Source: Chlorokybus atmophyticus (Eukaryota > Plantae > Mesostigma and Chlorokybus algae). From it: 55,769 bases of DNA. The stretch spans positions 221,299 through 277,067 of the forward strand of contig RHPI01001010.1 in the NCBI GenBank assembly GCA_009103225.1. The letters run 5' to 3'. The translations under genes and the position numbers were made by a program. Shown here piece after piece: positions 32,753 through 53,264 of the stretch. The notes below the pieces were generated by a model that ran no database searches, was not told where the DNA came from, and saw nothing but the letters and a program-made list of their open reading frames with translations. The first letter of the stretch is position 1. Each line of letters begins with the position of its first letter.

Positions 32753-35700
32753 CCCCAGGCACCTGCCCCTCCAGGGCCAACGACGGCAGCCACTGCGAGC
32801 CTGCGGACCCCAGCGATTCCAGCTCGCCGTGCTACTGCTTCCCCTTCATCAATGGCAGAACGTAGGCTACCCCAGTCTCTTCCACCTCCCCCACCGCTTT
32901 TGTTTCTGCTTGCTGTACATGTTAATACCACACATGCCGACTGTGGGGACTGTGCGCAGTGGGGAGTACGACCTCAGCCAGAAGTACACTTGGAATGCTG
33001 GCCAGGTGAAGTGCAAGAGTATAGGGGAAACTTGGCACAGATCTTCAGTGAAGCTGAGCGCGACACCATCTTCAACAGAAGCAAGCCCGCCATCAATGTG
33101 TGGATCGGCCTATCACGCAACACGAAGGTTACCAGACTCGAGTGGGACCACCTCCACTGCCCTAATCCCCGCCAAGCACAGTGTCCGGCTCGCGTGAACC
33201 TCTTCAAGTGGGGTGGACACGTATTTGGCACATATTCGATTATACATGCCTCTCGCTCTCCCCCTGTTCTTCCCGGCTCTACCTTGTGCGCGCATGTGTG
33301 CGTGAGCCGCTGACCGGGCATCGCTGCACTGGCAAGATTGTGCAGACGTATCAGGACTGGTGGGTTAACGATCGCGGCATCCATGAGCCAGACAACCAAT
33401 ATTTCAAAGGCAACGAGTACTGCGTCGTCATGCTTGGTGGTGGCAACTGGATCGATCACCACCCCCCGCAGCCCGGCACATGGAACGACGACCGCTATGA
33501 CACGAAATACCTGGTTGTCTGCCAAGGTACTTTGTGCGTGAATGTGCTGCGCTACCTACAACATCAGAGACTTACTCGCTCTGGCCCGCAGCGTGGAAAG
33601 TCGCCACCACCTCATCCCCCACCGAGTCCGCCACCATCTCCCCCACCAAGCCCCCCGCTACCTCCCCCACCGAGCCCTCCACCACCTCCCCCACCGAGTC
33701 CGCCACCTCCCCACCCGAGTCCCCCACCNNNNNNNNNNNNNNNNNNNNNNNNNNNNNNNNNNNNNNNNNNNNNNNNNNNNNNNNNNNNNNNNNNNNNNNN
33801 NNNNNNNNNNNNNNNNNNNNNNNNNNNNNNNNNNNNNNNNNNNNNNNNNNNNNNNNNNNNNNNNNNNNNNNNNNNNNNNNNNNNNNNNNNNNNNNNNNNN
33901 NNNNNNNNNNNNNNNNNNNNNNNNNNNNNNNNNNNNNNNNNNNNNNNNNNNNNNNNNNNNNNNNNNNNNNNNNNNNNNNNNNNNNNNNNNNNNNNNNNNN
34001 NNNNNNNNNNNNNNNNNNNNNNNNNNNNNNNNNNNNNNNNNNNNNNNNNNNNNNNNNNNNNNNNNNNNNNNNNNNNNNNNNNNNNNNNNNNNNNNNNNNN
34101 NNNNNNNNNNNNNNNNNNNNNNNNNNNNNNNNNNNNNNNNNNNNNNNNNNNNNNNNNNNNNNNNNNNNNNNNNNNNNNNNNNNNNNNNNNNNNNNNNNNN
34201 NNNNNNNNNNNNNNNNNNNNNNNNNNNNNNNNNNNNNNNNNNNNNNNNNNNNNNNNNNNNNNNNNNNNNNNNNNNNNNNNNNNNNNNNNNNNNNNNNNNN
34301 NNNNNNNNNNNNNNNNNNNNNNNNNNNNNNNNNNNNNNNNNNNNNNNNNNNNNNNNNNNNNNNNNNNNNNNNNNNNNNNNNNNNNNNNNNNNNNNNNNNN
34401 NNNNNNNNNNNNNNNNNNNNNNNNNNNNNNNNNNNNNNNNNNNNNNNNNNNNNNNNNNNNNNNNNNNNNNNNNNNNNNNNNNNNNNNNNNNNNNNNNNNN
34501 NNNNNNNNNNNNNNNNNNNNNNNNNNNNNNNNNNNNNNNNNNNNNNNNNNNNNNNNNNNNNNNNNNNNNNNNNNNNNNNNNNNNNNNNNNNNNNNNNNNN
34601 NNNNNNNNNNNNNNNNNNNNNNNNNNNNNNNNNNNNNNNNNNNNNNNNNNNNCCCCCCCCACCCAGTCCGCCACCTTCTCCCCCACCTCCTGCTGAACGC
34701 TTCATCTCTAGGGACATTGGTGCCACACAACCAGGATCCACCACGTACGTCAAGAAAACCGGCCTTTACACCATCGCCAACCGCGGAAGTAAGCTTCGTG
34801 TGTTGCATGGGGTCTGAGACAATGGACTCTCGTCTGAAGTGCAGCATTGACTAATAGTCATTACCAATGTTGCAGTGATAGCGACGATTGCTCTCTTTCG
34901 TTGCGCATTTTTTAACTTCCATCTGTTGAACAATTGGATGCGTGGCATTGAGTTCATCACAAATTAATGGTTGATTTTGCCGGGGATATCTATGGCACAA
35001 CAGACTCGTTCCACTACGTGTACGCGCAACGGGTGCGCACCGGCGACTTCACCTTCATCGTGCATGTGGTGGATACAGCCTCTTTCGATTTTCCCAACAT
35101 GAAGTCGGGCATTATAGTTTGCGCTGGCCTTGCTCTTGGTGAGTTTGAAAAGCTGCAAGCATAGTCAAGTGCATCATTCATGCTGTCGGCAATGCTGATG
35201 CGGGGTTTGCGTAGGGTCGCCGGCGTTTGAGCTCCTTATTGGAAAAACTTTTGTGTCACCGTCCACGGTCTTCATTCAGGTATACCGATGTATTGCATGC
35301 CTAGTAAATGTGATGATCGATGTTGTTGTAGGCACGGGTACCCACATCGTAGTAAATCAGCAATCAGACGTTCAATGTAACAAAACTTACGTGCAGATTC
35401 GTGAAACGCTTGGGGGACAAACAATTACAGAGCCGTTTCATGGTGCACCATACAGGCGTGTCGCTTTGCCAATCTTCCTCAAGCTGTCGCGCACAGGGGA
35501 CGTTATCACCGCATCGGGTAAGCTCTTTGCAGCCACCGCCAAACGCAGCAGCTATTCCGGTTGTGCAATTGACCACCCCTCACTCCATCTCACTGCCTTT
35601 CTCCCTCTCTTCTCTACGTCTGTGTGCTTTATTCTTCAGCTTCCAGGAACGGAGTCAAGTATACCACAATATACAGCTACACAGCCTCGGGTCCTCTCGC

Positions 35701-39442: not shown

Positions 39443-40838
39443 TATTAAAGAATGCCGTCGCGCTAAGTCGCTTGGTGGTACGGCGTTCGCGCCCGCTGCT
39501 GCACCAGAGGCCTCACTTAGCCTGGCATACATGGGAACTACGACTGGTTGTATGAGCCGCAGCCATGCTATCAGCCTGAGCCTGCCGGCGGGGGTGGGGC
39601 TGGCCGGGTGTGTGTGGGCGATGGGGTGGGGCGAGAGGCAGTGAGGCTGCGGTGGCCCCATCTCTCTCTTTCCCAAGCTTAACGCGCGCGCCGCCGTGCG
39701 GGAGCTGTTAGCGGGAGCTGGCTCAGGATGAGCAAGTGTTGAGCTGCCGTTGCAGATTTCAAGGTCAGCTGCACGCTAAGTCAGCCGTGGCAAGACGTTT
39801 GTGTGTGATTTTTCGTGTGTGCGTGTACGTGAGGCGTTAGGCTATGCACAGTCGGCTGCAGCTAAACTATCCTGCCCCAGCGGCGGCCGGCGCATGATTC
39901 AGTCTGGCAAGCTGTGTGGTTGCGGAACTGTTCAGACTGCATGTTTTACATATATACGTCTGAAATGCGAGATCCTTGCTGCTGCTTGAGGCCGCGAGCA
40001 AGCTCTTTTGCTTTTGCTCGCTACTTAAGCAGCCGTGCAAAGGCGTGCTGCATGGCTTCTTTGCGATTGCACGCATGAATATATTAAGTAGCGTAGTAGT
40101 AGTAAAAGGTCAATTTTTATTGATTGAAAAGAGGAATATCGGGTTTGCAAGCAGCATTCGCTGAATGCCGGCGAATACCGTCTGATATCAGCACACCTGT
40201 ACTGTCTGGCATGCGCACATAGTTATTCTTCGGCCACCATGTGCAAGCTGCCTACGTGTCAATTCAGGCGATCCAACACATGTATACAGCCGTCACTGTC
40301 ATTATTTGTGCAGTCAAGGTGTGTTGCAATGCAAAATCCGCTTTCAAACACAATGCGTATTGCTCAGGCAATGTCCACTGCAGCGTCAACCAGCATGGTA
40401 GAGTGACGGGCATCTATCGGCAGAGATATGCTCGTTGCAACAAATGCATTATATAAGGTAACATCAGCATGCTGATGGTATAACATATAGTCTACCATCA
40501 GCATGTTATATTACAACACGTGCATGCAGCACTGCGGCATGACATTGCTTACCACTGCCCTATTTTGGCAAGTCATTCGTGCTTAGCACACGAGTATGTA
40601 TAGATGGCCACATTTGAAGCTTTACTATATTACTATATTGGGTACGACAGTGGTATTGATGATGAGCTATGTATGTGCTGGTCACAAGGATTGTCCGTCT
40701 GCAACTGTGCACGCAGGTCGCTAAACGCTGCTTGTGCTTTGCGTGGCCTTGGTGGCGCCGCTGCTTGCTGCACACGCTTCTTTTCACCTGCTGCAAGTCT
40801 AAAGCAGCCGTAGAGGAACACAGGCAGCCACAGCAAGA

Positions 40839-41081
40839 GGTAAGGCTAACCAGCTGAGGCCCGGCGACGTCATCCAGTGCCGAGAGTGCGGCTACCGCAT
40901 CCTGTACAAGAAACGCACGAAGCGAGGTGTGTGTGTTAAGCATGCGAACGAGATTTTGTAGATGCGGTTGCATGCACTACAACCGTGCATACCTACCGAG
41001 CTTTTGCACGCATGCGAGGTTGACACTTTGGCTTCTCTTTGTGTGCGCTCTTTGGCAGTCATTCAGTATGAGGCTCGCTGA
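40839..41081 (+). CDS. RPB12: RNA polymerase I/II/III common subunit RPABC4 (RPB12); only the C-terminal two exons are recognisable
   Basis: [29 protein letters not shown]|VIQYEAR* with an intron at 40927-41058. The first CxxC exon was not found with certainty. Confidence 0.85.
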
Positions 41082-41405
41082 GCAGTAGGCGAAGGTGTCG
41101 GCCGGATTACGCAGAGAACGGCGCCGTCATGTAAGCCTGTGCACTGAGAAGTGAAGCACTTCTACTGTACTGCAGTACTTTGCAACTATCTGTACCGGTT
41201 CATGTACATACACTTATCAGTGGCCTGCATGCTAGCACAGTGGTCTTTCAGAAATGCACTATGTTGGCACCACCATGAAGTATGTGTATAGGCTTGTGCT
41301 TTTATTGAGTTTAGCTCACTACTGTATGGCTCAACTGAAGCTGCGATTAGCTTTGCAGTGTTTGCATAGCCTGGTGCATAGTGCACCAGCTATGCCTGCG
41401 ACCCA

Positions 41406-42645
41406 ATGTATACTTACAGGTTAACAGGAGGTAGCGAGGAGGTGCTGGACTTAGCTGTGGAGCTTGTTCTTGGTGACGACCTGCTGCCGTACATCTTGCG
41501 CTGTCTGTCCGCGCAAGAGCTCTGCAGTGTAGCGTGCGTGTCGCCCCGCTGGAACGAGCTTTCGAAAGAAAGCGGCTTGTGGCACACGCACTTCAAGCAT
41601 GCGCATCCGCAGCTTGGAAGACAGTTGCAGCCTTCCGGCCGCGCAGATTGGAAGCGACTTTATAGGGCTATAGGTGCGACTGCATTGATGCGTGTTGTGT
41701 TCTTGCCTGAGGCATGCAGAGCTTGATGCTTGTTTGCAGATAATGTACATAAGAGGCTGTCAGCGGCAGACTTTCTCCCTATGGATGGAATAGATTCATC
41801 TTCACACAAGTTGGATATGACAGTCGGACACACTTGTCATACGTTCGCTGGGATTTGGTAAGTATGCTGATAATGCTGGCGTGTTTTTGGAGTGGTCTGC
41901 ACTTTTGTCATCGTCCCCGGCTAACTCAGTTCTTTGTGCGTGTAGGAGCAGTGCTCCTTCGCCAAACCCAGATGGCAGTGAGTGGCTGAGGTATCATCTC
42001 AAAAATGGGCCTGCAATCATCCAGTCCGTTGCATTGCTGCCATTCGCCTCAGGACGGTAACTGAGTAGACTCTTGGTGTTGTGCATGCTTGGCATACAGA
42101 TAGCTGGTCATTATTTCGCCTTGCAGTTTACGCACTACACTCTTCACTCATACAGGTGTTATGCGCCAAGGGAAATACAGCTCTTCGCTGGCATGTCCCT
42201 AGACAGTTGTGACTATGCAGGCTTTCCAGACTACCAACCAGTCAGAAATGAGTCAAGTGAGTATGTGGGCACGTTCGCTCCCGTTACCTCATGCTGTGGC
42301 TGCGGCAGACATGTGTCTTGTGCAACATACATCATGTGGAGTGCATGCAGTTGCTTGTGTGCAGCAGCAGTGAGAGTCCTGAGTTTTGAGCCATGCAGTC
42401 TTGCCTCAAACTGATTTGTATTTGGACAATTTAGCACTTGTGGTCTTGGCTTGGCATCATAGTGAGGCTGAGCTTGCACTGCAGGCATGCAAGGGTTTGC
42501 TATGCCTGATCTGGTTTTTGGAGAGTATGTGAAGCTGGACCTGTTCGGCTACTACGAAACGCATTTTATGCAGGGGCAAGAAGAAGACTACTACCAGTGC
42601 CTGCACCGTGTTGTGCTCCGTGGCGTCTCCTGCTCCTCCGGTTAG
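41406..42645 (+). CDS. F-box protein, At4g00755-like family (5 exons; the true start may lie upstream)
   Basis: F-box DDLLPYILRCLSAQELCSVACVSPRWNELSKESGLW. Phase-consistent exons 41406-41673, 41740-41857, 41946-42056, 42156-42256 and 42485-42645 give WSSAPSPNPDGSEWLRYHL, CYAPREIQ and FAMPDLVFGEYVKLDLFG...YYQCLHRVVLRG. Confidence 0.8.
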
Positions 42646-43202
42646 TTGTGCATTCGATTTGCATGACAGTCTCGCTTATGCGCTGTGAATCCTCTCCATA
42701 GTCTTGGTGGTTTGGCAGATGACATCCAGGATGATTACCTGAGGGAGGTTCTGATGTCCTGCGCCAGCAATGCACAGTGAGTGTGACCCAGCGGAGTGCA
42801 AACGCTGTAGTCCTGCTTGTGTCATCCTCCTTGCCACCGCTTCAGCGGCTGAAGTGGTGGCAAGGATTTAGCCTGGTGATTTGCCATCTCGTCATGAGGT
42901 AGCGGTCCGCACAAGGATAGTGGCTGGCAGACGCCATCAACCTAGCAAACTCACATCCTTAAGTATGATTTCACCCTTATATGCTATTGCCTTCATCTGT
43001 AATTCACATGCGTGTTACTTGCATGTCAGCATCTGCTGTAGTTACTTGAGCAGGGGTCCTGTATTGGACAGACTATGCATATGTTGTGCCATGAGTGCCC
43101 GTTGGTTTGCGTACTCAATTTTGTAGAATTCTGTACATGTGCGCTTCTTGTTTCAGTACTCATAGAGATGATGATGTTTGGTGTGCTCTTGTTGCAATAC
43201 AG

Positions 43203-43482
43203 GTTACAGGAGGTTGCAGAACCCAGCGACCCACTGCAGAAACTGACTACAGAAACCAAACCACCAGCCGCAGCAAATGACGCAGCTGAGGAGGTTCATG
43301 CTGCCAATGTGCCTGCTCCCCAAATGGATGAGCGCTCGGAACAAAGGGGGGAAACGGAGGCACAACCGGTTGTTGCAGAACTCGGTGACCCACCGCAGAG
43401 ACTTGCTACACAAACCAGCCCACCAGCCACAGTAGCTAAAGAAGCACCTGAGGAGGCAAGTCCTGCTGTTGATGTATACTGA
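43203..43482 (+). CDS. Acidic Pro/Glu/Ala-rich terminal exon of an unidentified gene
   Basis: Open frame LQEVAEPSDPLQK...EEASPAVDVY* after a cag acceptor. No recognisable domain. Confidence 0.35.
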
Positions 43483-44089
43483 CAATGATACACGTGCTAA
43501 GATCAACTTCTTGATGAGTCGAAGCATCAAGGTAGAACAAAAAGTGTTGCAGGTTGACATGTTCATTGCAAGCAGGGATCACATAAACTGCAGCTTAGCT
43601 TAACACACGTCGGCGCACCAATGATACCACTGTGTCTGTGAACGTTAGCGAATAGTCAGCCCAAGCTGTAGGTGCTTGCCATGTGTTCCTTTACCGAAGC
43701 ACAAACAACACAGCACACAACTTGTTGCACGTGTACACATGCATGTTGCATGCTTTGCCATCCGCATGCGCAGGTACTTACATTGCCGACATTCTGTCAG
43801 GAATCCGAAGGGATAACCAGTTCAAGGCCATCTTCTGCCCATGGCCATGTCAACAGCAGCTTATCAACACCCAAAGGTCATGACCACCAAGACCGACAGG
43901 TACCCGGACAAGGTCACAGTAGCACAGCATGACGATTGGTTGGCAATTTCTCGCAAGCCGCTAGGTGCCTACTGACGGACCTGGAGGGAAACAAATCAAT
44001 GTCAGTTCAACATGGTGAACTGATATTCATACGGTTCACCATGGTACAATTGAACCTGATTTCCATAATGTCTGCAGGACTCATCTTCA

Positions 44090-47000
44090 ATGGACAGAAG
44101 CTGGAAAACAGTGTCTTATGGAGCACAACGACTACTGGCTGTATTAGTAACATACGCTCTACTATACATGCTGGTAGGGCCTTTTATGCAGTGGTCTAGC
44201 CCGTCATTGAATTGGGGGATCCGGAATACAGACCAAGAGCCCAGAACACGGGTGCGTTGTCGCTGCTGCAGCTGATAAGGCATGCACACATGAGCTGGGA
44301 TAAGTGCAGTTCATCACTCTCGCATGCTGAGCTCAGGAGTGCGGCACACATTGAGTTCGTTTTGTCACACTGGCTTCAGACATTGCTTGTCGCAGTTATT
44401 GTCCAGTGAAAAGGAATCCAAGGAGTTGGTCGAGTATGTGGTAGACTTGCGCCACCGGCTGGATGGAAGCCTGGTCAACTCCACACTCGTTGATCAAAGC
44501 AAGGTGCGCTTGAGTTTATATGTACGATACCTCAGTCCATGTAGGAGCTGGGATGACCCTCGTAGTTTTCATTGCAAGCTTGCTCCTTGTGCTGCGTATG
44601 CGTTACTGGCCAGGGAGACGATGCTGGGTTTGTTGTTGTACAGGACAAGGTTAACTGGGACGTCTTCATCAGCCACAGGGGTCCAGACGTCAAGCACGAC
44701 TTCGCAACAATGCTGTGGTGGCATCTTAAACGCTTTAGTACATTCCTTGATTACAGGAGCTTGAGACTTGGTGGCAATGGCTTGGCTAATATAGCTCGCG
44801 CTCTGCGTATGGCGAATGTCACAATAGTCATCTTGACCCCTGGCTTTTTTAAGAGCAAGTACTGCATTGCCGAGCTTGAGGCGGCATTGCGCTACAGCTC
44901 AGAGGGCAGCCCAACGTTGCTGCCTGTGTTTCTTGGACAGGACGTAAACGAGTTGACTGATGAGGTCAGGGACAACCTCAATTGCAAGCCTCAGGAGCTT
45001 ACCCTCTGTGAGGCCTGCGTTCTGCTGGACAAAATCACAGCAGTGACAGGAATAGTTGTCCAAGGTCCTTGGGATGAAGCCATAAGAAGCATTGAGGTCA
45101 GGGTGGATGAGCTGCTTAAGGTATGTTCGTTGCATTATGCATGCACTCGTTGTTTGTTTACCGCCTTAGTGCATCACGTGCTCTTGCAGTCAAAGTCTGC
45201 AACACATGGATTGCTTACCAAATGGAGGCATACAATCCATGAGGAGCATTCAGCGCTGGAGTCCCGCACTGACGTTGCACTGGAGCATTTGTCTGGGTTA
45301 CGGTGCAGATTGAAAGATATGAATGCAAGCCTTCAGTGTTTGGTTGAGAGCGCTTATGAGCGGGCTTCAGCTGCAGTGGTAACTGAAGCTGACATGCACA
45401 AGGACAAGTTTACCAAAGGTGAGTTGCAAGCTGCTTCTTAAGCTTGCCGCAGGAGGCTAATAGCTTTGATACGTTCCACCACAGGAAACGAAGCCCTTGG
45501 GCAATTCCTGCTGCTTGTGCGCGAAGCACGCTTCTGTGTGTTGTGGACGCATTGGTGTTGCGTCACCAGTAGCGCTTTGGCATTGCTTGTGCCCGGTTTG
45601 CACGAGTATCAATGGCGTTACGATGAAGACTATAGTGGATTGAAGGCCATTAAGCTTGCAGCGTTACTTGGAGAGAAAATGACAGTCTACAGCGCTGACA
45701 CATGCGATGAAGTCAAAGTCGCTGACATGGTCCGGGACGTCATGATGAGCCCGCGGCATACCAATGCCCGTGCTGCTAAGGAATTCACCAGTGAGTTGTT
45801 GAGTCAGTTTTCTGTGCAGCACTGATCCGTCATGAAGTTGCTGTGAGAGTCACATGACAATGGGCAGGTGGTGCGGTTTGTTCAGAAACTCTGTGATTAT
45901 GTCACTGGCACAACGGTTGGCACCTACGCCCTTGTCCAGTGCACATACAGCCTGTTTCTTTGTGTTGCAACTGCCCTGCGCAGGTGTTATCAGAAGCACC
46001 AAAGGGTATCTGGACGATGTTTGCAGCACCATCCTTCAAATGAACATACGGCTTAAACAAGATAGTGCAAGCACTTGTACAAGCATATGGAAAGAGCGGC
46101 CCGCATCATGCCCCCTGAATGCCACCTTCTTGGACGATGCTGAACAGCGGATGAAATTGGAGTTCACCAGACTGGCCACGCTGTTGCATGCTGGTCTCAA
46201 CTCTGAAGATTGCAGCATTGGGCTACAGCTTTGGCACTTGGCCTTAACAACCGGCACCAACGCTGGTGACCGTTGGTGCGTGGAGGACTTTCTTAAGAAC
46301 GATTTCCCGCGCTGGTGGCTAGACAACCGGCCTACGCATGCTGCAGGCCTTCCTATTTTGAAATCGGATAGTGGTGGTAGTGACACGAGCGCCTCTGGTC
46401 TGCGCTGTGATATTGAACAACCCAGCCCTTTGCAGAAGGCTTTTGTTGCTATGCAAGGAGCTCACGCCTATGAGAAAGTGGAACATGCCATTGGGCGCAT
46501 TGTATTTTTTCTGGATGTGAACACGTCTGATCAGGAACGGGGGGAGTTACTGAAGTACGTTGCAGACACTGTGCGGCAGTCACCAGGAGTGTTTGGGCAG
46601 CTGAAGGATGCTGATGTGCAAAAGCATTCCGTCTTGCTATTCCTTGAAGTCCTTGCGTTGCCTGCCGATCTTGACAGCTTGCAGGCATCAGCCATTGAGT
46701 GTTGGAAGAATGCCATGCTTCATGCAATGGGTCGGCAGCATTTCCCTTTCACCATTCAGCTGGGCAGCTACCGATTTGTAGTGGTCTTCGAAGGTTCGTA
46801 CCTTCTCGGTTGCCAGCAAATAGCAGTTGCTGTAGTTGGTGCTAACCTGCATCTGTGCTCTCGCAGAATCTGTGCTGCGCAATACCTTAACAAATCAGGA
46901 TGTGCCGGCAATAGCGAGCCTCAACGCAATGCAAGGTAGCTCATGGTTGCATGCGTTAGCATATATGTATGGTATATCGTATATATGCATGGTGATGCAG

Positions 47001-49308
47001 TGGACCCAAATCCAGCTGCAGCTGTAGGGAGTCCTTCCAGCCCATCACAACAGACTATATGTCGTGCAGGCCCGGACGGTTATTACAACATGTCTGGGCA
47101 CGTTCGAGACATGACAACCTGGTTTTTACGAAAGCCACAAGGCCAAGGACTTGAAATGTTGGTCGAAATGGCGAACGCCAGCGTTTTGAGAGAAAGGGGA
47201 GAGAAGGTGACTACTCGTCGGTGTCCCGCTGTCCGCATTGTTGAGGTTTACTTTGCTGATGCATTGTGCTGTCTGTAAAGCTGCGGAAGTATCTTCTGCC
47301 TGTTGTCTGGGTGAGTACCACGCAGCCTGTGTACCTGGAAGTTACAAGAGGGGGCCTTTGGGGAAGCCCTATTGACATTCAGGTGCGTGATCACGTCAGT
47401 CTCAATTCCTCAACGCATAAGGAAGCTTGCAGTCAATGTGGTGATGTCTGCCAGCATACTGTATGGTGTGCACGCCATGTTGTATGGCTGGCAGTCATTA
47501 GCAGTCATGTGACTGCTGTGTAATGACGGCTATTCAACACCTCAGTTGCTTCTTGTATTGTACAGGCTGTATCAAGTGTCTATCAAGTGCAGCAATGCAT
47601 CAACTGCAGCACCAACCACTAACACGGCTAGCACAGCTCAGTTACACTAGGATTTTCTATACACTTCATGTCATGTGACTCAATTAGTACCTTACTGCAA
47701 TGTGCACCTCAGACTACTGCATGAGTATACGTGATTTCAGACAGTAGTCTTTATGGTTCTGCGTGTCTTTGCACGCAAATGTCACAGCTGCAGGCAATGC
47801 CTGTATCTGCCTTGCCATCTGAGGCGTTCATCGCTTCAACTCCTTCGCAGAGCATAATACGGAGAGATGTGGGTTTCAAACCCCCTGTTGACATTCACCC
47901 TCCTCCTAGCCTTCTACACTGGTTGCTCGAGCGACTTGGCAATATGCAGGAGACGGTGACAACAAGAGCACGTGTTTCTCTCTCCTATGTCAACACGCTC
48001 GGCAAACACATCTGGGTCTTTCTTCCCGCCTCAGCGTTGTCAATGGTTACCTTCGTGTTGGATGCAACCAAAGGTACCTGTGTTTAATCTCGCAAGCTCG
48101 CATGTCATTGAGTGTCAAGTGAGCAGAGTGCAAGTCGCTTCCCAGCTTGGAAACTCTGGCTATAACTTGCATCTAACCCCAGGGCTGAACAACAGTCGAA
48201 TGCATATGTACAGCGCACGTACACGTACAGTCCCAACATTTGCACTACTACTTGACACTACAAGCACTGGCATGACCTCCCTCTTATTGCATAACAGCCT
48301 CAGGAGTGTTGCTACGCTCAGTTGCCAGGCCGTTCACCGATTTATTTATTGATCCACCTTATTTATTGATCCTGGTTGTGGTGTTGGCGTTCGTCATCGC
48401 CGCGATCACTCGTTGGCAAATTCATCAGCGCACAGCATTATCTACGGCTCAGAATCGAACAGTAAGTGCATGGGTCACTGCCTTGGTCATGTGCTAGTGC
48501 ACAAAGTCTATTATGCATGGGGCTTACGGTGTCCAAAGTGTCATGGTTTTGCACGAAGTTGGCATTCATATTTGTTAAGCCGTTGCATATTATCTCAGCA
48601 GCGACTACTCTGGTCCACATTCCCCAAGCGGAACACTGTAGTATTATTAGCTAGTATGCTCTGCGGCTTATGAGCCATGCAACGCGTGGTTTTGAACAGT
48701 TGACATTGCATCGGCAACCAACTCACAGCCTATTGCACGCCAGTATGAAAGCATGTTGAGGGCAGCATTGTCGTAACCATGGTTATGCATGATACTGTGC
48801 CCAGGTGCAAACCGACGAGGTGCTCGTCTTGTCCAGTCACTCCATTTCTATGCCGCCAATAGAGAGCTTAAGACAGTTTTGCGACCCTGCAAGCGCCCAC
48901 AAGGTGGAAGTGATCAGAATCCGGTCAGGTCAGTGGGTTGACGGCATTTGTGTGACGTACAGAGACGCACAGAACCAAAGGTTGGAGGGAACTCAGCATG
49001 GTGGCGAGGGGGGTGACCTACACATACTTGAACTAGCGGAGGACGAATACATTGTGAAGGTTTCTGGCCGCAATGCTGCTGTATATGGTGGCGTTGTCCT
49101 TCATGACTTGAGATTTCAGACGTCAGCTCGAAAAATGTGGCCAGAAAAGGGGGGATTTGGTGGCATGTCATCCGGTTGGGGCCCACCGCTCGACGAGTTT
49201 GTACTGCACAACAACGATCAGCCTCTGCTGCGGTTTTGCGGGAGTGAATGGAAACCAGATGGCAGTTGGTACCTTAGTTGTCTTGGTGCTTACTTTCAGA
49301 GTCCATAA
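44090..49308 (+). CDS. Membrane protein with an N-terminal TM, a TIR domain, a long unknown middle, TM segment(s) and a C-terminal jacalin-like lectin (11 exons, ~1092 aa)
   Basis: Exons 44090-44251, 44396-44503, 44644-45120, 45190-45418, 45485-45790, 45984-46793, 47070-47206, 47281-47382, 47788-48073, 48304-48461 and 48805-49308. All introns are GT-AG and phase-consistent; total 3279 nt with no internal stop. TIR: WDVFISHRGPDVK...SKYCIAEL...LLPVF. Jacalin: IRSGQWVDGI, HGGEGG, EDEYIVKVSGR, LRFQTS, LGAYF. Confidence 0.8.
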
Positions 49309-50093
49309 CAATGCCAAGCACTCAAAATGCAAGAAGCCCAGCGTAGTTTCTCTGTCTCTCTGTGTCAGCAATGAATGATCTCTTTCTCTTCCTTAGTGAT
49401 TGCATGTCCTGGTTGTGGATGACCTAGGTGTATGCAATCATGATCATAGTTTTGTGACAAGAACGGTACTCGTCATGACGATATCCATAATGATATATCC
49501 ACAAATGGACACGTGTGTCACTTGCAAAGATAATGTGTCTGTTGCATGTGTACAAGGCAACTCAATTCAAAACATCTCATCCCTTCGTTTTTGTTGCATA
49601 GCATCCTTGTAACAGTCAAGGCCAAATTTTGTGATTTTCATGGCCGTTTTAGGCCTTATTTGTAAGGTACATGGTTTTAATGACTTGTGGCGGATATCGG
49701 CGAGTTATGAGTCTGCCGCGGATATCGACCGGGGCCCCAAGACCAGTCCGAAAGTTGCCAGAAAACGGAGGGCCAGTCGAGAAGGGCTCGACCAGATTTC
49801 TGGAAGGGCCTGGCGCCAAGTAGTATAACTTGACCATATGAGCAGCAAATCAGGAGATCTTTGGTGCGTTGGAAAGGTCTAGAAGTGTACTACAATATTC
49901 TGCAATTATATCTTAGCTTCTAGTTCCGTCTAGCGCTAGAGTCGTCTAGACAGTAGCATGTGCAGACTGGTAGGTATAAAAGTGACATTCTACAATTTGC
50001 AATACAACCTTTAGCTCCCTAGTTTCTTGTGTGCAAGCTTGGTGGTGGCTAGAAGAGGTTGCTAGCGTGTGTCCACTGGTGTGTGCTTGCTTG

Positions 50094-50293: not shown

Positions 50294-50352
50294 ACGGTTT
50301 ACGAAGGTGAGAGAGGAAGTGTGTGGGCGTTTACACTTTTCATTCGGAAGCG

Positions 50353-51403
50353 GAGTGTAGTGTGTTAGTGGAGATGGAGGATGCTCGCATGGAAGAGCTT
50401 CAAGCTGCCATCTTGGCACTGAGGGAAGAGCTTCATCACACTCAAGCGGCGGCACAAGCACAACGCGAGGCGTATGAGCATGCGATGGCGCGTGTACAAA
50501 TTCCCATGGCATCAAGCTCGCGCGTGCATGTGAAGGTGCCAAAGCCCAAGCCATTCAAGGGTCAACGTGATGGAGATGCAGTGGATGAATGGATTTTTCA
50601 AGTATCGTCTTGGTTGAAGCTCACGGAGGTGCCCACGCATCTGCACGTGGAGGTTGCAGCGACATTGCTTGAAGGTGCAGCACTTGTGTGGTGGAGGCAT
50701 CGATGTACGCGTGTTGCAAACGGGTTGGCGCTACCATTGACCACCATGGAAGAGTTGGCACTGGAGGTCAGGCATCAATTTGTTCCCGTTGAGAACGTGA
50801 AGGCCGCACGCGACAAACTTGCAGCCCTTGTGCAACTGGGGTCGGTGATGGCGTACACGGCCGTGTTTCAACGATTGGAGATGTCCATACCCAATATGAT
50901 CGACGAGGAGCAGGTGGACAGGTATACACGTGGGTTAAAACCTTTGGGGCGTAAAGAAGTGGAGCTACAGGACCCGAAGACACTCGCGGAGGCTATACGC
51001 ATCGCGGAGCGTCTCGACGCGTTGTACTTGAAGTCCACTACAAGAAACACTGACTGGAGGCAAAGGCATGGTGATTAGCCCCGGGGAGGCTTTCAACATG
51101 CATGGCGACGAGGAGAACGAAGTTTAGCACTTGCCAATGGAGGTGGAGCTGACTCTGGGCCTGCACCAATGGAGGTGAGTGCCATACACACGCATGGAAT
51201 GTGACGCGAAGCACGGCGGACGTGGTGAAAGAGGTAAAGGTGTGCGCAAGTGTTATGCGTGTGGGTCGACGGAGCATTTGGCGTACGGATGCCCCAAACG
51301 AAGCACGCAAAGGCCAACACCGGATGGCAACCCTCGCCGTGATCGTCGCGTCAACACCATGGAGCAAAATGGCGTGGAGCAGGAAAACGACTTCCCCCAG
51401 TAG
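50353..51403 (+). pseudogene. gag: Ty3/Gypsy gag, degenerate
   Basis: PKPKPFKG...VDEWIFQV...LEGAALVWW, GPAPMEVSAI and the CCHC knuckle CYACGSTEHLAYGC. Premature TAG at 51076-51078 plus a further stop and shift before the knuckle. Confidence 0.9.
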
Positions 51404-53264
51404 GTGAGGAGGCTACTGCTGGGGATAGGAAGGAGCCTCATGCACGGACGGATGCTGTGACATTTCCATTAAAGAAGCAAGAGGAGATGGCTTTGAACGC
51501 GCCAATGGTGGTGAGTTATGCAAACGAGGAGACAACAAAGTACTTTGGGCTTCGAGCACACATTTGCGATGACCAAGGACGATGGAGAGAGTGTAAGCTC
51601 ATGATTGATAGCGGTGCCAACAGCAACTTCATGAGTATTGATATCGCGCGGCGTTACGGTTGGCTTTCGTCATTACGAGGAGGTGAAGTGAAGCTCGCTG
51701 ATGGAGAGCCACCCTCTGGAGGTGATGGCGCTGCGTTTATGACCAAAGAGTTGTGCGTTCGCATTGGGAAGATGAAGGAGAACATGCGATTTTGCTGCAT
51801 CACCCTACGGAACGGGTTTGACAGGATATTGGGACTACCGTGGCTATGGCAACATAATCCATCCATCAATGGGAGAAAGCGCGCGCTCACCATCGAACGA
51901 AATGGTGGAGAATCCATTCAAGCTGCGTCGGACGTCATCGAGGCGCGGCACGCACAATCAGGTGGTACGACAATTGCCCAGATCTGTTATGTGCAATTGA
52001 GGAAGTTATTGTCTCCACGGAAGGCAAAGGCTGCATGGTTGTGCGTGGTGCGCGAAATTACTGCAAAGTCAGCACCAGAGCTGAGTGACGATGTTAAGAC
52101 GGCTACGATGGACCCCGAGGTGTGTAAACTTGTTTTAAAATACCAAGATATCATGGTGGACGGACTTCCATCTGGACTACCACCTCCACGAAGCGTAGAC
52201 CACCGTGTGGAGCTGATTGGGGGCGTGCACAAGCCACCGTATCGACCCGTATATAAGTTGTCACCTTTCGAGCTGGAAGAGGCCGAGAGGCAGGTGGCGG
52301 ACTTGCTGAAAAGAGGCTACATCAGGCCTAGTAAGTTCCCCTATGGTGCACCTATTTTGTTTGTACGAAAGAAGAACGGGAGCTTGCGCATGTGCGTCGA
52401 CTACCGAGCTCTCAACAACATCACGAAGAGGAATTGCTTTCCACTCCCACGTATCGACGAGTTGCTGGAGCAATTGCAAGGTGCGCAATACTTGACAACA
52501 CTTGATCTTGCTCGAGGTTATCACCAAATCCGCATCGCGCCCAAGGATGTGGAGAAAACAGCTTTAAACACACGTTATGGGCACTACAAGTGGTTGGTCA
52601 TGTCCTTTGGACTTACGAACGCACCGGCAACATTTCAAACGCTTATGAACAGCGTTTTTGCTGACTTGATTTGTAAGGGAATCCTCGTGTACCTCGACGA
52701 CATTTTGGTGTACGCGAAAACAAAGGAGGAGCACGTGGCACTTTTACGGCGCGTGTTGCAGCGTTTGCGCGAACACAAGTTGTACGCCCAGCTACAAAAG
52801 TGCAAATTCTTGCTTCGAGAGGTGGAGTACCTAGGCCACATCGTGTCGCATGAAGGCATCAAGCCGGACCCCAACAAAGTGCAGGCGGTGCGCGAGTGGG
52901 TTCCCCAACCAACGTGAAGGAGGTGATGTCCTTTTTAGGCCTTGCGGGGTATTATCGCAAGTTTATCATAGGGATTTCGCACATAGCTGCTCCCTTAGCT
53001 GCCCTACTCAAGAAGGGAAAGCCTTGGAGCTGGTCAGCAACAGAGGAACATGCATTTGCTGCGTTGAAGAAGGCGCTGACGGAGGCACCAGTCCTGGCTC
53101 ACCCCGACATGAAAAAGACATTTATTTTGGCTTGCGACGCGTCCGACACAGCCGTAGGAGCTGTTTTGCAGCAAGACCATGGCAACGGCCTTCAACTAAT
53201 AGCATTCTTTAGCAAGAAAATGAGTTGTGCGGAGCTGAATTACCCCGTGCACGAGAAGGAACTT
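51382..53264 (+). pseudogene. pol: Ty3/Gypsy pol (protease, RT, partial RNase H); frameshifted and 3'-truncated, no integrase or 3' LTR
   Basis: MIDSGANSNF, LRMCVDYRALN, YLDDILVY, FLGLAGYYRKF, LACDASDTAVGAVLQQ, NYPVHEKEL. One-base frameshift near 52905. Homology stops at ~53264. Confidence 0.95.

Follow-up and report, generated by a model that had tools for sequence, protein, structure and literature searches.

A candidate membrane-tethered protein combining F-box, TIR, and jacalin-like lectin domains in the green alga Chlorokybus atmophyticus

The combination of an F-box, a TIR domain, membrane helices, and a jacalin-like lectin domain in one gene, found here in Chlorokybus atmophyticus, is without counterpart in the sequences searched. 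We tentatively read the locus as one expressed, lineage-specific gene on the forward strand, comprising 20 exons from the ATG at 41406 to the stop codon ending at 49308 and encoding a membrane-tethered TIR "chimerolectin" of 1488 aa. All positions refer to the window, i.e., the whole stretch of 55,769 nt of contig RHPI01001010.1 that was analyzed. The 20 exons yield a single open reading frame, and every intron is of the GT-AG type apart from a single GC-AG intron. The domains follow each other in the order F-box and galactose-binding-like domain, disordered acidic linker of ~120 aa, hydrophobic helix 1, TIR, orphan region of ~600 aa, weak hydrophobic stretch, strong helix, and jacalin. An intact protein with TIR, membrane helices, and jacalin had been proposed in the first-pass annotation, and the intact reading frame and RNA-supported expression agree with that proposal. 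The same TIR-membrane-jacalin architecture was sought among 5.8e9 proteins, and only the model of the locus itself was returned. No second example of the architecture was present in 1.8–5.8 billion sequences.

Two RNA contigs, X1 (3813 nt, study P1) and X2 (4915 nt, study P2), each joined all splice junctions from 43896/44075 to 48461/48805. Because each contig is one molecule with all of the junctions, a single transcript encodes TIR and jacalin. The first-pass annotation had placed them in one gene and had suggested an RNA check across the junctions; every exon of its range was joined by X1 and X2, from two independent studies, and neither contig indicated polyadenylation between 45.8 and 48.8 kb. 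The gene is not silent, a possibility that had also been raised: expression was seen in three runs from two studies, and the word depth of X1 was high. Chlorokybus is an early-branching green alga.

The exon that contains ATG 44090 (Met393 of the full model) and helix 1 (44078–44251, RNA joints) is followed by a short exon of 36 aa between helix 1 and the TIR domain (44396–44503; joints 44250/44395 and 44501/44642) and by the TIR exon (44644–45120). The orphan region is distributed over seven exons between 45190 and 48073 (45190–45418, 45485–45790, 45984–46793, 46867–46935, 47070–47206, 47281–47382, and 47851–48073), all of them connected by RNA joints. The strong transmembrane helix is encoded at 48298–48461 (joints 48071/48296 and 48461/48805), and the last exon (48805–49354) comprises the jacalin-like lectin domain, the stop codon (49306–49308), and a short 3′ UTR, with the RNA contigs stopping at 49340–49354. 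The canonical GT-AG introns described previously for this range were confirmed, whereas the counts of 11 exons, 10 introns, and ~1092 aa had to be corrected to 12 exons and 11 introns (44078–49354) and 1096 aa from ATG 44090. An alternative in-frame donor at 45096/45097, used in a further contig, X3 (joint 45094/45188), removes 8 aa of the TIR exon. The gene is followed, at a distance of 1 kb, by a Ty3-type retroelement.

The gene does not start at 44090, as had been assumed; both the transcript and the open frame extend in the 5′ direction via two linker exons (43801–43899 and 43203–43455) and beyond. Upstream of 44075, X1 reaches ~470 nt and X2 1563 nt further, although RNA contigs may cross gene borders and X2 probably also runs into the 3′ end of the RPABC4 gene. 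The frame 5′ of 44090 is open over 121 codons and coding-like. The Ser/Thr/His-rich linker exon 43801–43899 has an open frame with a codon score of +0.23 and is in frame with the following exon, to which it is connected by the GT..AG joint 43896/44075 in X1, X2, and X3. In X1 and X2, the 30 loose letters preceding 43799 are identical to 43424–43453. Since AGG is common to both ends, GC..AG is the sole possible cut for intron 43456–43800, which provides the acidic, proline-rich linker exon 43203–43455 with a GC donor. The joining frame of this exon, which contains an internal repeat, scored +0.35 per codon with no stops, compared to −0.03 and −0.22 for the other frames, and the DNA 5′ of the acceptor at 43203 scored as non-coding in all three frames. 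Every exon of the model, both linkers included, displays coding-type codon usage. We regard the domain identities, the expression, and the exon arrangement 3′ of 43.8 kb as established. The coordinates of the first-pass annotation span just the 3′ three quarters of the gene.

Further upstream, words of the segment 42650–43200 had a share of 0.10 in either RNA run, indicating neither contiguous read-through nor a separate 3′ UTR of an F-box gene. Four observations, namely a frame that stays open and coding-like, the lengths of the contigs, the absent intergenic words, and the public gene model, lead us to infer that the TIR-jacalin exons are spliced to the F-box exons, junctions 42640/42719 and 42776/43203 included. 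By this splice chain, the F-box would reside in the same polypeptide as TIR and jacalin, preceding Met393 with 392 further residues that also contain the galactose-binding-like domain. The public model P0001 (Chlat1 4736) links F-box and TIR in the same way as the 20-exon model. It wrongly fuses the neighbouring RPABC4 gene as well and is demonstrably chimeric there.

Exon 1 (41406–41673) begins with ATG 41406, closely preceded by an in-frame stop, and encodes the F-box at residues ~20–65. Exons 2–6 (41740–41857, 41946–42056, 42156–42256, 42485–42640, and 42719–42776) encode the galactose-binding-like domain characteristic of the At4g00755-like F-box family, and their boundaries, all with GT-AG sites, recover residues 63–328 of P0001. 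Residues 79–120 of P0001 matched the Pfam families F-box-like (E 4.5e-08) and F-box (E 6.1e-07), both past the cut-offs, and the F-box could be aligned to that of SKP2. In an Atlas feature search, the module scored 0.96 against "F-box protein At4g00755-like" clusters of Streptophyta; a word-based sequence search with the F-box part returned no relative, and the family membership is thus one of language-model features. Like members of this family, residues 1–270 of the Chlorokybus protein appear to consist of an F-box followed by a galactose-binding-like β-sandwich. The members are, however, stand-alone proteins of 320–375 aa and unknown function, whereas the Chlorokybus protein splices past the stop into 1200 more residues. 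With such stand-alone relatives, the link to the F-box might reflect read-through that is minor or recent.

The TIR domain spans residues 483–641. Its exon matched Pfam TIR_2 (E 9.6e-16) and TIR (E 2.4e-13), both past the curated cut-offs, and the best solved relatives are of plant origin, with L6 (6e-12), AtTIR (1e-11), and RPV1 among the top matches. The earlier assignment as a plant-type TIR agrees with these matches. PADLOC matches were ThsB and PDC-S66, and the closest TIRs share 33–40% identity across the domain. Position by position, the segment SKYCIAEL is matched to SKWCLMEL of L6 and to SSWCLDEL of AtTIR, so that the Glu of this (S)xWCxxEL-form motif (codon 44872–44874) is kept. This residue, established as the catalytic one of TIR enzymes, suggests that the domain is of the plant/bacterial NADase type, with activity predicted from the sequence.

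The unrecognized middle part noted in the first-pass annotation proved to be ~600 aa without a match in Pfam, PDB, NCBIfam, and PADLOC. A HMMER search with its core exon against 1.84e9 representatives retrieved nothing but the model of the locus itself, and AlphaFold2 without alignment gave a pLDDT of 34. Atlas provided two leads, namely the Rab3GAP catalytic subunit for exon 45984–46793 (0.87, low recognition) and a TRADD-N-like domain for the whole orphan region (0.56). We rejected the Rab3GAP assignment (PF13890), as there was no Pfam match up to E 10 and the Atlas signal was gone with the whole-region query. The orphan region makes up ~40% of the protein.

For the C-terminal domain, the segment 48805–49305 matched Pfam Jacalin (PF01419) over profile positions 17–136 of 136, with E 2.1e-15 and a score of 57.8 bits where the cut-off is 22. 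The best solved match was banana lectin (BanLec; E 3.5e-10). The jacalin domain reported previously is confirmed, though not as a complete β-prism, with profile positions 1–16 unmatched and one of two banana-lectin-type GXXXD sites kept. Like the mannose-specific jacalin-related lectins BanLec and Heltuba, the domain belongs by Pfam to the β-prism I family; GQWVD (48928–48942) aligns with the GXXXD motif G34–D38 of BanLec, and HGGEGG with the GGSGG/G60 loop, both of site II. In contrast to these lectins, the unmatched N-terminal profile positions include the GG loop, and the C-terminal GXXXD of site I is, as judged by eye, replaced by S-W-Y-L-S. With one GXXXD site apparently lost and the N-terminal GG loop unmatched, at most one sugar site is likely to be functional. 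The structure model of the domain had a pLDDT of 36 and did not confirm the β-prism fold.

Hydropathy peaks were found at all three places named in the first-pass annotation. Helix 1 (44132–44188, residues 407–425) has a Kyte-Doolittle value of 2.12 and the strong helix (48360–48410, residues 1288–1304) one of 2.56; a weak hydrophobic stretch lies at 48010–48060. Hessa sums, which are position-independent, were +0.32 kcal/mol for helix 1 and −1.15 for the strong helix, and the candidates ranked next had +2.1 and +4.6. The hydrophobic nature of helix 1 was thus recognized correctly, but the helix is not N-terminal, because the transcript and frame extend 5′ of 44090. Helix 1 carries three Lys/Arg in its N flank and one in its C flank and has disordered sequence on both sides. 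In a 19-aa window, the strong helix has two Lys/Arg in each 15-aa flank. If it is read as 17 residues ending with T1304, R1305 joins the C flank, giving three Lys/Arg and no acidic residue there, compared to two Lys/Arg and two acidic residues on the N side. The positive-inside rule hence argues for a cytosolic C flank of the strong helix and a cytosolic jacalin domain. Plant jacalin-related lectins are normally cytosolic. Simple topology rules would place both F-box and jacalin in the cytosol, so that a lectin ectodomain as in a Toll-like receptor is disfavoured.

The position of the TIR domain depends on helix 1. If helix 1 is not inserted and the weak stretch forms a hairpin with the strong helix as the anchor, the TIR would be cytosolic, an arrangement for which the case is a serious one, though short of probable. 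That both helix 1 and the strong helix span the membrane, which would render the TIR extracytosolic, is quite possible too. More doubtful is the fuller version, in which a catalytically competent TIR and the 600-aa orphan module would be lumenal or extracellular, with F-box and jacalin in the cytosol. If true, this would make it the first eukaryotic TIR outside the cytosol, processing NAD+ in the lumen or at the cell exterior in the manner of CD38, with ubiquitin and glycans exerting control from the cytosolic side. In such a two-pass protein, helix 1 would be a signal anchor of N-in orientation and the strong helix a stop-transfer sequence, leaving the F-box/galactose-binding-like part and jacalin in the cytosol and TIR and orphan region (~860 aa between the helices) in the lumen or exterior. 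Just these two segments are hydrophobic enough for insertion (+0.32 and −1.15), although by a scale applied without position weighting; the positive-inside rule is obeyed at both; and the disordered polar flanks of helix 1 are typical of a true membrane helix. A folded N-terminal part of 406 aa is not translocatable, so an N-in orientation is expected for signal-anchor insertion. On the other hand, the NAD+ substrate is cytosolic, we know of no eukaryotic TIR that acts outside the cytosol, and the loop from helix 1 to the weak stretch is not enriched in sequons or cysteine, with 7 NxS/T and 17 Cys in 820 aa. We consider this two-pass explanation, together with its functional extension to a NAD+ processor laid out like the type II ecto-NADase CD38 with turnover set from the cytosol by SCF and lectin, somewhat unlikely.

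Two further explanations concern the gene itself. An internal promoter might produce a separate protein of 1096 aa from ATG 44090, in which helix 1 would serve as an N-terminal anchor and the TIR would be cytosolic and the jacalin exoplasmic, resulting in a lectin-gated Toll-like receptor. Met 44090 is indeed followed by 13 residues and then by a 19-aa hydrophobic helix resembling a signal anchor, a strong transmembrane helix separates TIR and jacalin, and RNA contigs lose rare or alternative 5′ ends. However, X1 and X2 both run 5′ through spliced exons, unbroken at 44078, the preceding 121 codons are open and coding-like, and 44090 sits 1.2 kb downstream of ATG 41406 on the observed mRNA. Moreover, the charges around helix 1 favour N-in with the TIR outside, those around the strong helix a cytosolic jacalin, and neither signal peptide nor LRR was found; we consider this receptor model improbable. 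We give equally little credit to a conjoined or young transcript without selected function, i.e., an F-box read-through spliced to a lineage-specific TIR-jacalin gene or an expressed neutral product of exon shuffling. Neither the orphan region nor the architecture has a homologue, and this complete lack of homologues leaves selection without evidence. The distance to the closest TIRs, the stand-alone F-box relatives, the low-complexity linker exon with its internal repeat, and the nearby retroelement also fit this explanation. It is countered by the intact frame of 1488 codons with coding-type usage in all exons, the conserved catalytic Glu and one sugar-site motif, the expression in three runs from two studies with high X1 depth, and the lack of a detectable separate F-box 3′ UTR.

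For the single membrane-tethered protein that we prefer, a mode of action may be proposed from the domain families. F-box and jacalin would face the cytosol, and the protein would be clustered by multivalent glycans that attach to the lectin and/or the galactose-binding-like domain. TIR self-association is an established trigger of NAD+-cleaving or signal-nucleotide activity; clustering could thus bring the TIR domains together and elicit such activity, whereas the F-box in the same chain might couple the protein or a bound glycoprotein to SCF ubiquitylation. Were helix 1 to cross the membrane, the TIR would lie outside the cytosol, and this scheme would need NAD+ there. A membrane-tethered cytosolic sensor, the second option of the first-pass annotation, is viable. 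Its first option, a Toll-like glycan receptor, stands as regards the combination of TIR, transmembrane helix, and jacalin, but is weakened by the N-terminal F-box and galactose-binding-like module in place of a signal peptide and an N-terminal ectodomain, the inverted order, the charge rule for jacalin, and the absence of LRR and any further hallmark of Toll-like receptors.

The likeness to animal Toll-like receptors is weak. As in these receptors, a transmembrane helix separates the TIR from the ligand-binding domain. Toll-like receptors possess a signal peptide, an N-terminal LRR ectodomain, a single transmembrane helix, and, at their cytosolic C-terminus, a TIR functioning as an adaptor scaffold. 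Pfam detected no LRR in the whole public model; the protein begins with an F-box module, lacks a signal peptide, and has no hydrophobic segment ahead of residue 407. The order in Chlorokybus is inverted, with an enzyme-type TIR downstream of helix 1 and upstream of the strong helix, and a C-terminal lectin that is cytosolic by charge rules.

TIR-lectin and F-box-lectin chimeras are known in plants, the former including AtPP2-A5 (TIR and Nictaba/PP2 lectin) and the Myrtaceae TNJ class (TIR-NBS-jacalin) (PMC12355970; bioRxiv 10.64898/2026.07.23.740426). Like these, the Chlorokybus protein unites a plant-type TIR with catalytic Glu and a carbohydrate-binding domain, a jacalin in the case of TNJ, in one polypeptide. 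Both are, however, soluble, and TNJ combines an NB-ARC with several repeats of jacalin, whereas the Chlorokybus protein bears just one jacalin in addition to its membrane helices, 600-aa orphan region, and N-terminal F-box; NB-ARC, the NLR hallmark of TNL and TNJ, was absent from Pfam scans of the whole protein and of pieces. With F-box lectins, i.e., plant F-box-Nictaba and mammalian FBXO2, FBXO6, and FBXO27, it shares an N-terminal F-box and a glycan-binding module whose expected location is cytosolic. F-box-Nictaba and the FBXO proteins tie glycan recognition to SCF ubiquitylation, and they are small, soluble, and without TIR. The Chlorokybus lectin, in contrast, is jacalin-type and lies 1300 residues from the F-box, beyond the membrane helices, and SKP1 binding is putative.

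The locus is represented in three Chlorokybus RNA runs, which come from two studies, and their contigs were aligned to positions 43760-49720. Every junction was present in one contig of run X1 (study P1; 3813 nt) and in one contig of run X2 (study P2; 4915 nt). Introns were absent from these contigs, and the records are thus derived from RNA. On the forward strand, the contigs define 12 exons, at 44078-44251, 44396-44503, 44644-45120, 45190-45418, 45485-45790, 45984-46793, 46867-46935, 47070-47206, 47281-47382, 47851-48073, 48298-48461, and 48805-49354. All 11 introns within 44078-49354 are of the GT-AG type, and the reading frame from the ATG at 44090 comprises 1096 codons. The spliced in-phase reading frame with GT-AG introns described in the first-pass annotation was therefore borne out, but its counts of 11 exons and ~1092 aa have to be replaced by 12 and 1096. 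Acceptors placed by eye at 47001 and 47788/47794 were rejected, as the RNA joints lie at 47070 and 47851. Since X1 and X2 each carry all junctions on a single contig, TIR and jacalin reside on one mRNA, as had been proposed; polyadenylation between 45.8 and 48.8 kb is contradicted by the same junctions.

Run X3 revealed a minor alternative in-frame 5' splice site at 45096/45097. Its use shortens the TIR exon at its 3' end by 45097-45120, or eight residues (VRVDELLK), and the word depth of this junction (3.0) comes near the 3.6 of the canonical one in the same run. Within the 468-nt intron 47383-47850, a separate RNA contig of 230 nt covers 47490-47719 at low depth (4.7 versus 123.9); it could stem from precursor RNA that has not been spliced, from an exon used alternatively, or from a small transcript in its own right. 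Two substitutions relative to the genome, which probably reflect different strains or alleles, occur in the runs of study P1: 46039 A>G is synonymous (Gln), and 49105 G>A replaces an Asp of the jacalin domain by Asn. X2 agrees with the genome.

The initial description was thus largely correct, but its start at 44090 truncates the gene, because both the RNA contigs and the open frame continue upstream. X1 and X2 extend 5' of 44078 via a spliced exon at 43801-43899, and the 30 letters next upstream map to 43424-43453. According to the RNA contigs, the intervening intron, 43456-43800, is GC-AG with the donor GCAAGT, as the AGG common to both ends permits only one canonical cut. In the frame of ATG 44090, exons 43203-43455 and 43801-43899 are free of stops and score +0.35 and +0.23 per codon, respectively, with core exons ranging from +0.11 to +0.53. 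Coding-type codon usage was found in these two exons in this frame only, and the sequence just 5' of acceptor 43203 scored as non-coding in all three frames. A contiguous 5' exon starting at 43075-43171 was rejected, since 43039-43202 scored as non-coding in all frames and, of the words of 42650-43200, a share of just 0.10 occurs in the two RNA runs. This share is the one expected from a single 58-nt exon in that interval, and it excludes contiguous read-through as well as a 3' UTR belonging to a separate F-box transcript.

When the GC donor indicated by the RNA is used, a model of 20 exons from ATG 41406 to the stop at 49308 yields one unbroken frame of 1488 aa. The same exons are joined in P0001 (jgi Chlat1 4736), the public 1535-aa Chlorokybus atmophyticus model of the locus, back to six exons for an F-box (Pfam, 4.5e-08) and its adjoining domain. 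It is likely that the F-box exons are fused by splicing to the TIR-jacalin gene via inferred junctions at 42640/42719 and 42776/43203, because X1 and X2 reach ~125 nt and ~1210 nt, respectively, beyond the linker exon 43203-43455, which are fitting lengths, because the word share of 0.10 for 42650-43200 agrees with it, and because P0001 makes the same link. The remaining ~400 nt or so of X2 probably reflect overlapping transcripts of the neighboring RNA polymerase subunit gene RPABC4.

The 5' end of P0001 is certainly wrong, as RPABC4 has been merged into it. P0001 uses another frame (41075-41131) and merges RPABC4 with the F-box/TIR/jacalin gene. We rejected this link, since an alternative acceptor gives RPABC4 the C-terminus ...KRTKRVIQYEAR, followed by a stop, which we take to be the family-typical end. 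RPABC4 is a stand-alone gene at 40803-41082 (+), with its zinc-ribbon exon ending at 40928/40929 and a second exon starting at ~41059. Moreover, for intron 43456-43800 P0001 takes a GT donor that lies 24 nt further 5' and so lacks eight residues (VAKEAPEE). It also lacks a Cys-Arg pair (6 nt, 45304-45309) that the genome encodes and that both RNA contigs, ungapped there, contain. In total, the public model has merged three units: RPABC4, the F-box gene, and the TIR-jacalin part. The RNA data support a link between the last two only.

In the numbering of the 1488-aa protein, the F-box (residues ~20-65) is followed by a galactose-binding-like domain that extends to ~270 and resembles that of the At4g00755-like F-box family. 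A language-model feature search (Atlas) related the F-box part to this family, whose streptophyte members stand alone and measure 320-375 aa, with a score of 0.96; a word-based search returned no relatives of it. A linker that is acidic, rich in Pro and Ser, and internally repeated (272-392) leads to hydrophobic helix 1 (407-425). Within the linker exon, two ~24-aa units, EVAEPSDPLQKLTTETKPPAA and VVAELGDPPQRLATQTSPPAT, are similar as judged by eye, which suggests an in-frame internal duplication. The TIR (483-641) and jacalin (1322-1488) domains named in the first-pass annotation were both recognized by Pfam, the former in exon 44644-45120 (TIR_2, 9.6e-16; TIR, 2.4e-13) and the latter, a jacalin-like lectin, at 48805-49305 (2.1e-15; profile positions 17-136 of 136). 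Among solved structures, those of the plant TIRs L6 and AtTIR come closest to the TIR, and its SKYCIAEL aligns with their WCxxEL motif, so that a catalytic-type glutamate is present. Banana lectin is nearest to the jacalin domain: GQWVD and HGGEGG align with its second sugar site, and the first sugar site and first strand region are, by eye, not conserved. AlphaFold2 without alignment gave a jacalin model with a pLDDT of 36, too poor for a fold search.

The region between TIR and membrane segments (642-1245) had no sequence match in Pfam, NCBIfam, PADLOC, or the PDB, and none of the exons between TIR and jacalin matched Pfam. For its largest exon, an exhaustive HMMER search of 1.84 billion representatives found no homologue beyond P0001. 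The AlphaFold2 model without alignment (pLDDT 34) was too poor for a fold search. A resemblance to the Rab3GAP catalytic subunit (Atlas, 0.87) is at most a tentative lead, having no Pfam match at E up to 10 and no Atlas match on the whole region, and the same holds for a TRADD-N-like Atlas match (0.56), which was not reproduced by profiles. The region makes up about 40% of the protein.

Hydropathy peaks at the same three places as originally noted, that is, at helix 1, a weak stretch (1246-1262), and a strong transmembrane helix (1288-1304). Membrane insertion was estimated by a simple biological-hydrophobicity sum, unweighted by position. By this sum, only helix 1 (+0.32) and the strong helix (-1.15) are predicted to be insertion-competent; the next best segments scored +2.1 and +4.6. 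Helix 1 is flanked by three Lys/Arg on its N-terminal and one on its C-terminal side. For the strong helix, a 19-aa window leaves two Lys/Arg in each 15-aa flank. If the helix is ended at T1304, R1305 falls into the C-terminal flank, which then, as read from the sequence, holds three Lys/Arg and no acidic residues, and the two Lys/Arg of the N-terminal flank are offset by two acidic residues.

Two models are consistent with the charge rule. Either the weak and strong helices pair as a hairpin and the whole protein is cytosolic, or the membrane is crossed twice, by helix 1 and by the strong helix, which would place the TIR and the region of 642-1245 outside the cytosol. Under both, the F-box and jacalin would be cytosolic, the location known from the biology of these families. 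A Toll-like arrangement, in which the lectin would face the exterior and the TIR the cytosol, ranks lowest, because it breaks the charge rule at the strong helix and because, given the F-box extension, helix 1 is left without a means of orientation. The analogy to Toll-like receptors drawn initially is weak.

Residues 438-1535 of P0001 matched only P0001 itself among 5.8 billion proteins in a word-indexed search. A query of TIR plus helix 1 retrieved only three proteins, which are short, TIR-only, and 33-40% identical, and tblastn detected no paralogues within the window. We regard this architecture as real and expressed; so far, it is the only one of its kind. Our literature search found no work combining TIR, jacalin, and streptophyte algae, and surveys of plant and algal TIR architectures list neither F-box or lectin fusions nor membrane-anchored or F-box-linked TIRs (PMC9806590). 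Known are F-box-lectins and TIR-lectin chimeras, namely AtPP2-A5 and the TIR-NBS-jacalin "TNJ" class of Myrtaceae (PMC12355970; bioRxiv 10.64898/2026.07.23.740426). These TIR-lectin chimeras are soluble, whereas membrane helices are predicted for the Chlorokybus protein. The gene is a variant of both chimera types, TIR-lectin and F-box-lectin, and the alga that carries it is of phylogenetic interest.

From family knowledge, the protein may be a membrane-tethered TIR chimerolectin, in which glycan-driven clustering would activate the TIR and the F-box on the same chain would direct either the protein itself or the ligand it binds to ubiquitylation by SCF. TIR domains are an enzymatic core common to the immunity of bacteria, plants, and animals, and Chlorokybus stands at the base of the streptophytes. 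The expressed gene combines a TIR, whose active site is predicted to be intact, with membrane attachment, a lectin, and, probably, an adaptor of a ubiquitin ligase, and so bears on how TIRs came to be coupled to sensors at a time when NLRs and EDS1 did not yet exist. It offers a testable case that could reveal whether glycan sensing or ubiquitylation gates a TIR without an NLR. An extracytosolic TIR, if true, would be unprecedented; otherwise, the protein would be a lineage-specific chimera that widens the known TIR-lectin and F-box-lectin classes.

About 1 kb 3' of the gene, ORFs of a Ty3-type LTR retrotransposon occupy 50323-52917 (+), with matches to gag/capsid (E 1.5e-10) and reverse transcriptase (E 5.7e-39). 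An assembly gap of 924 N lies at 33729-34652 and gives rise to spurious long ORFs that span it.
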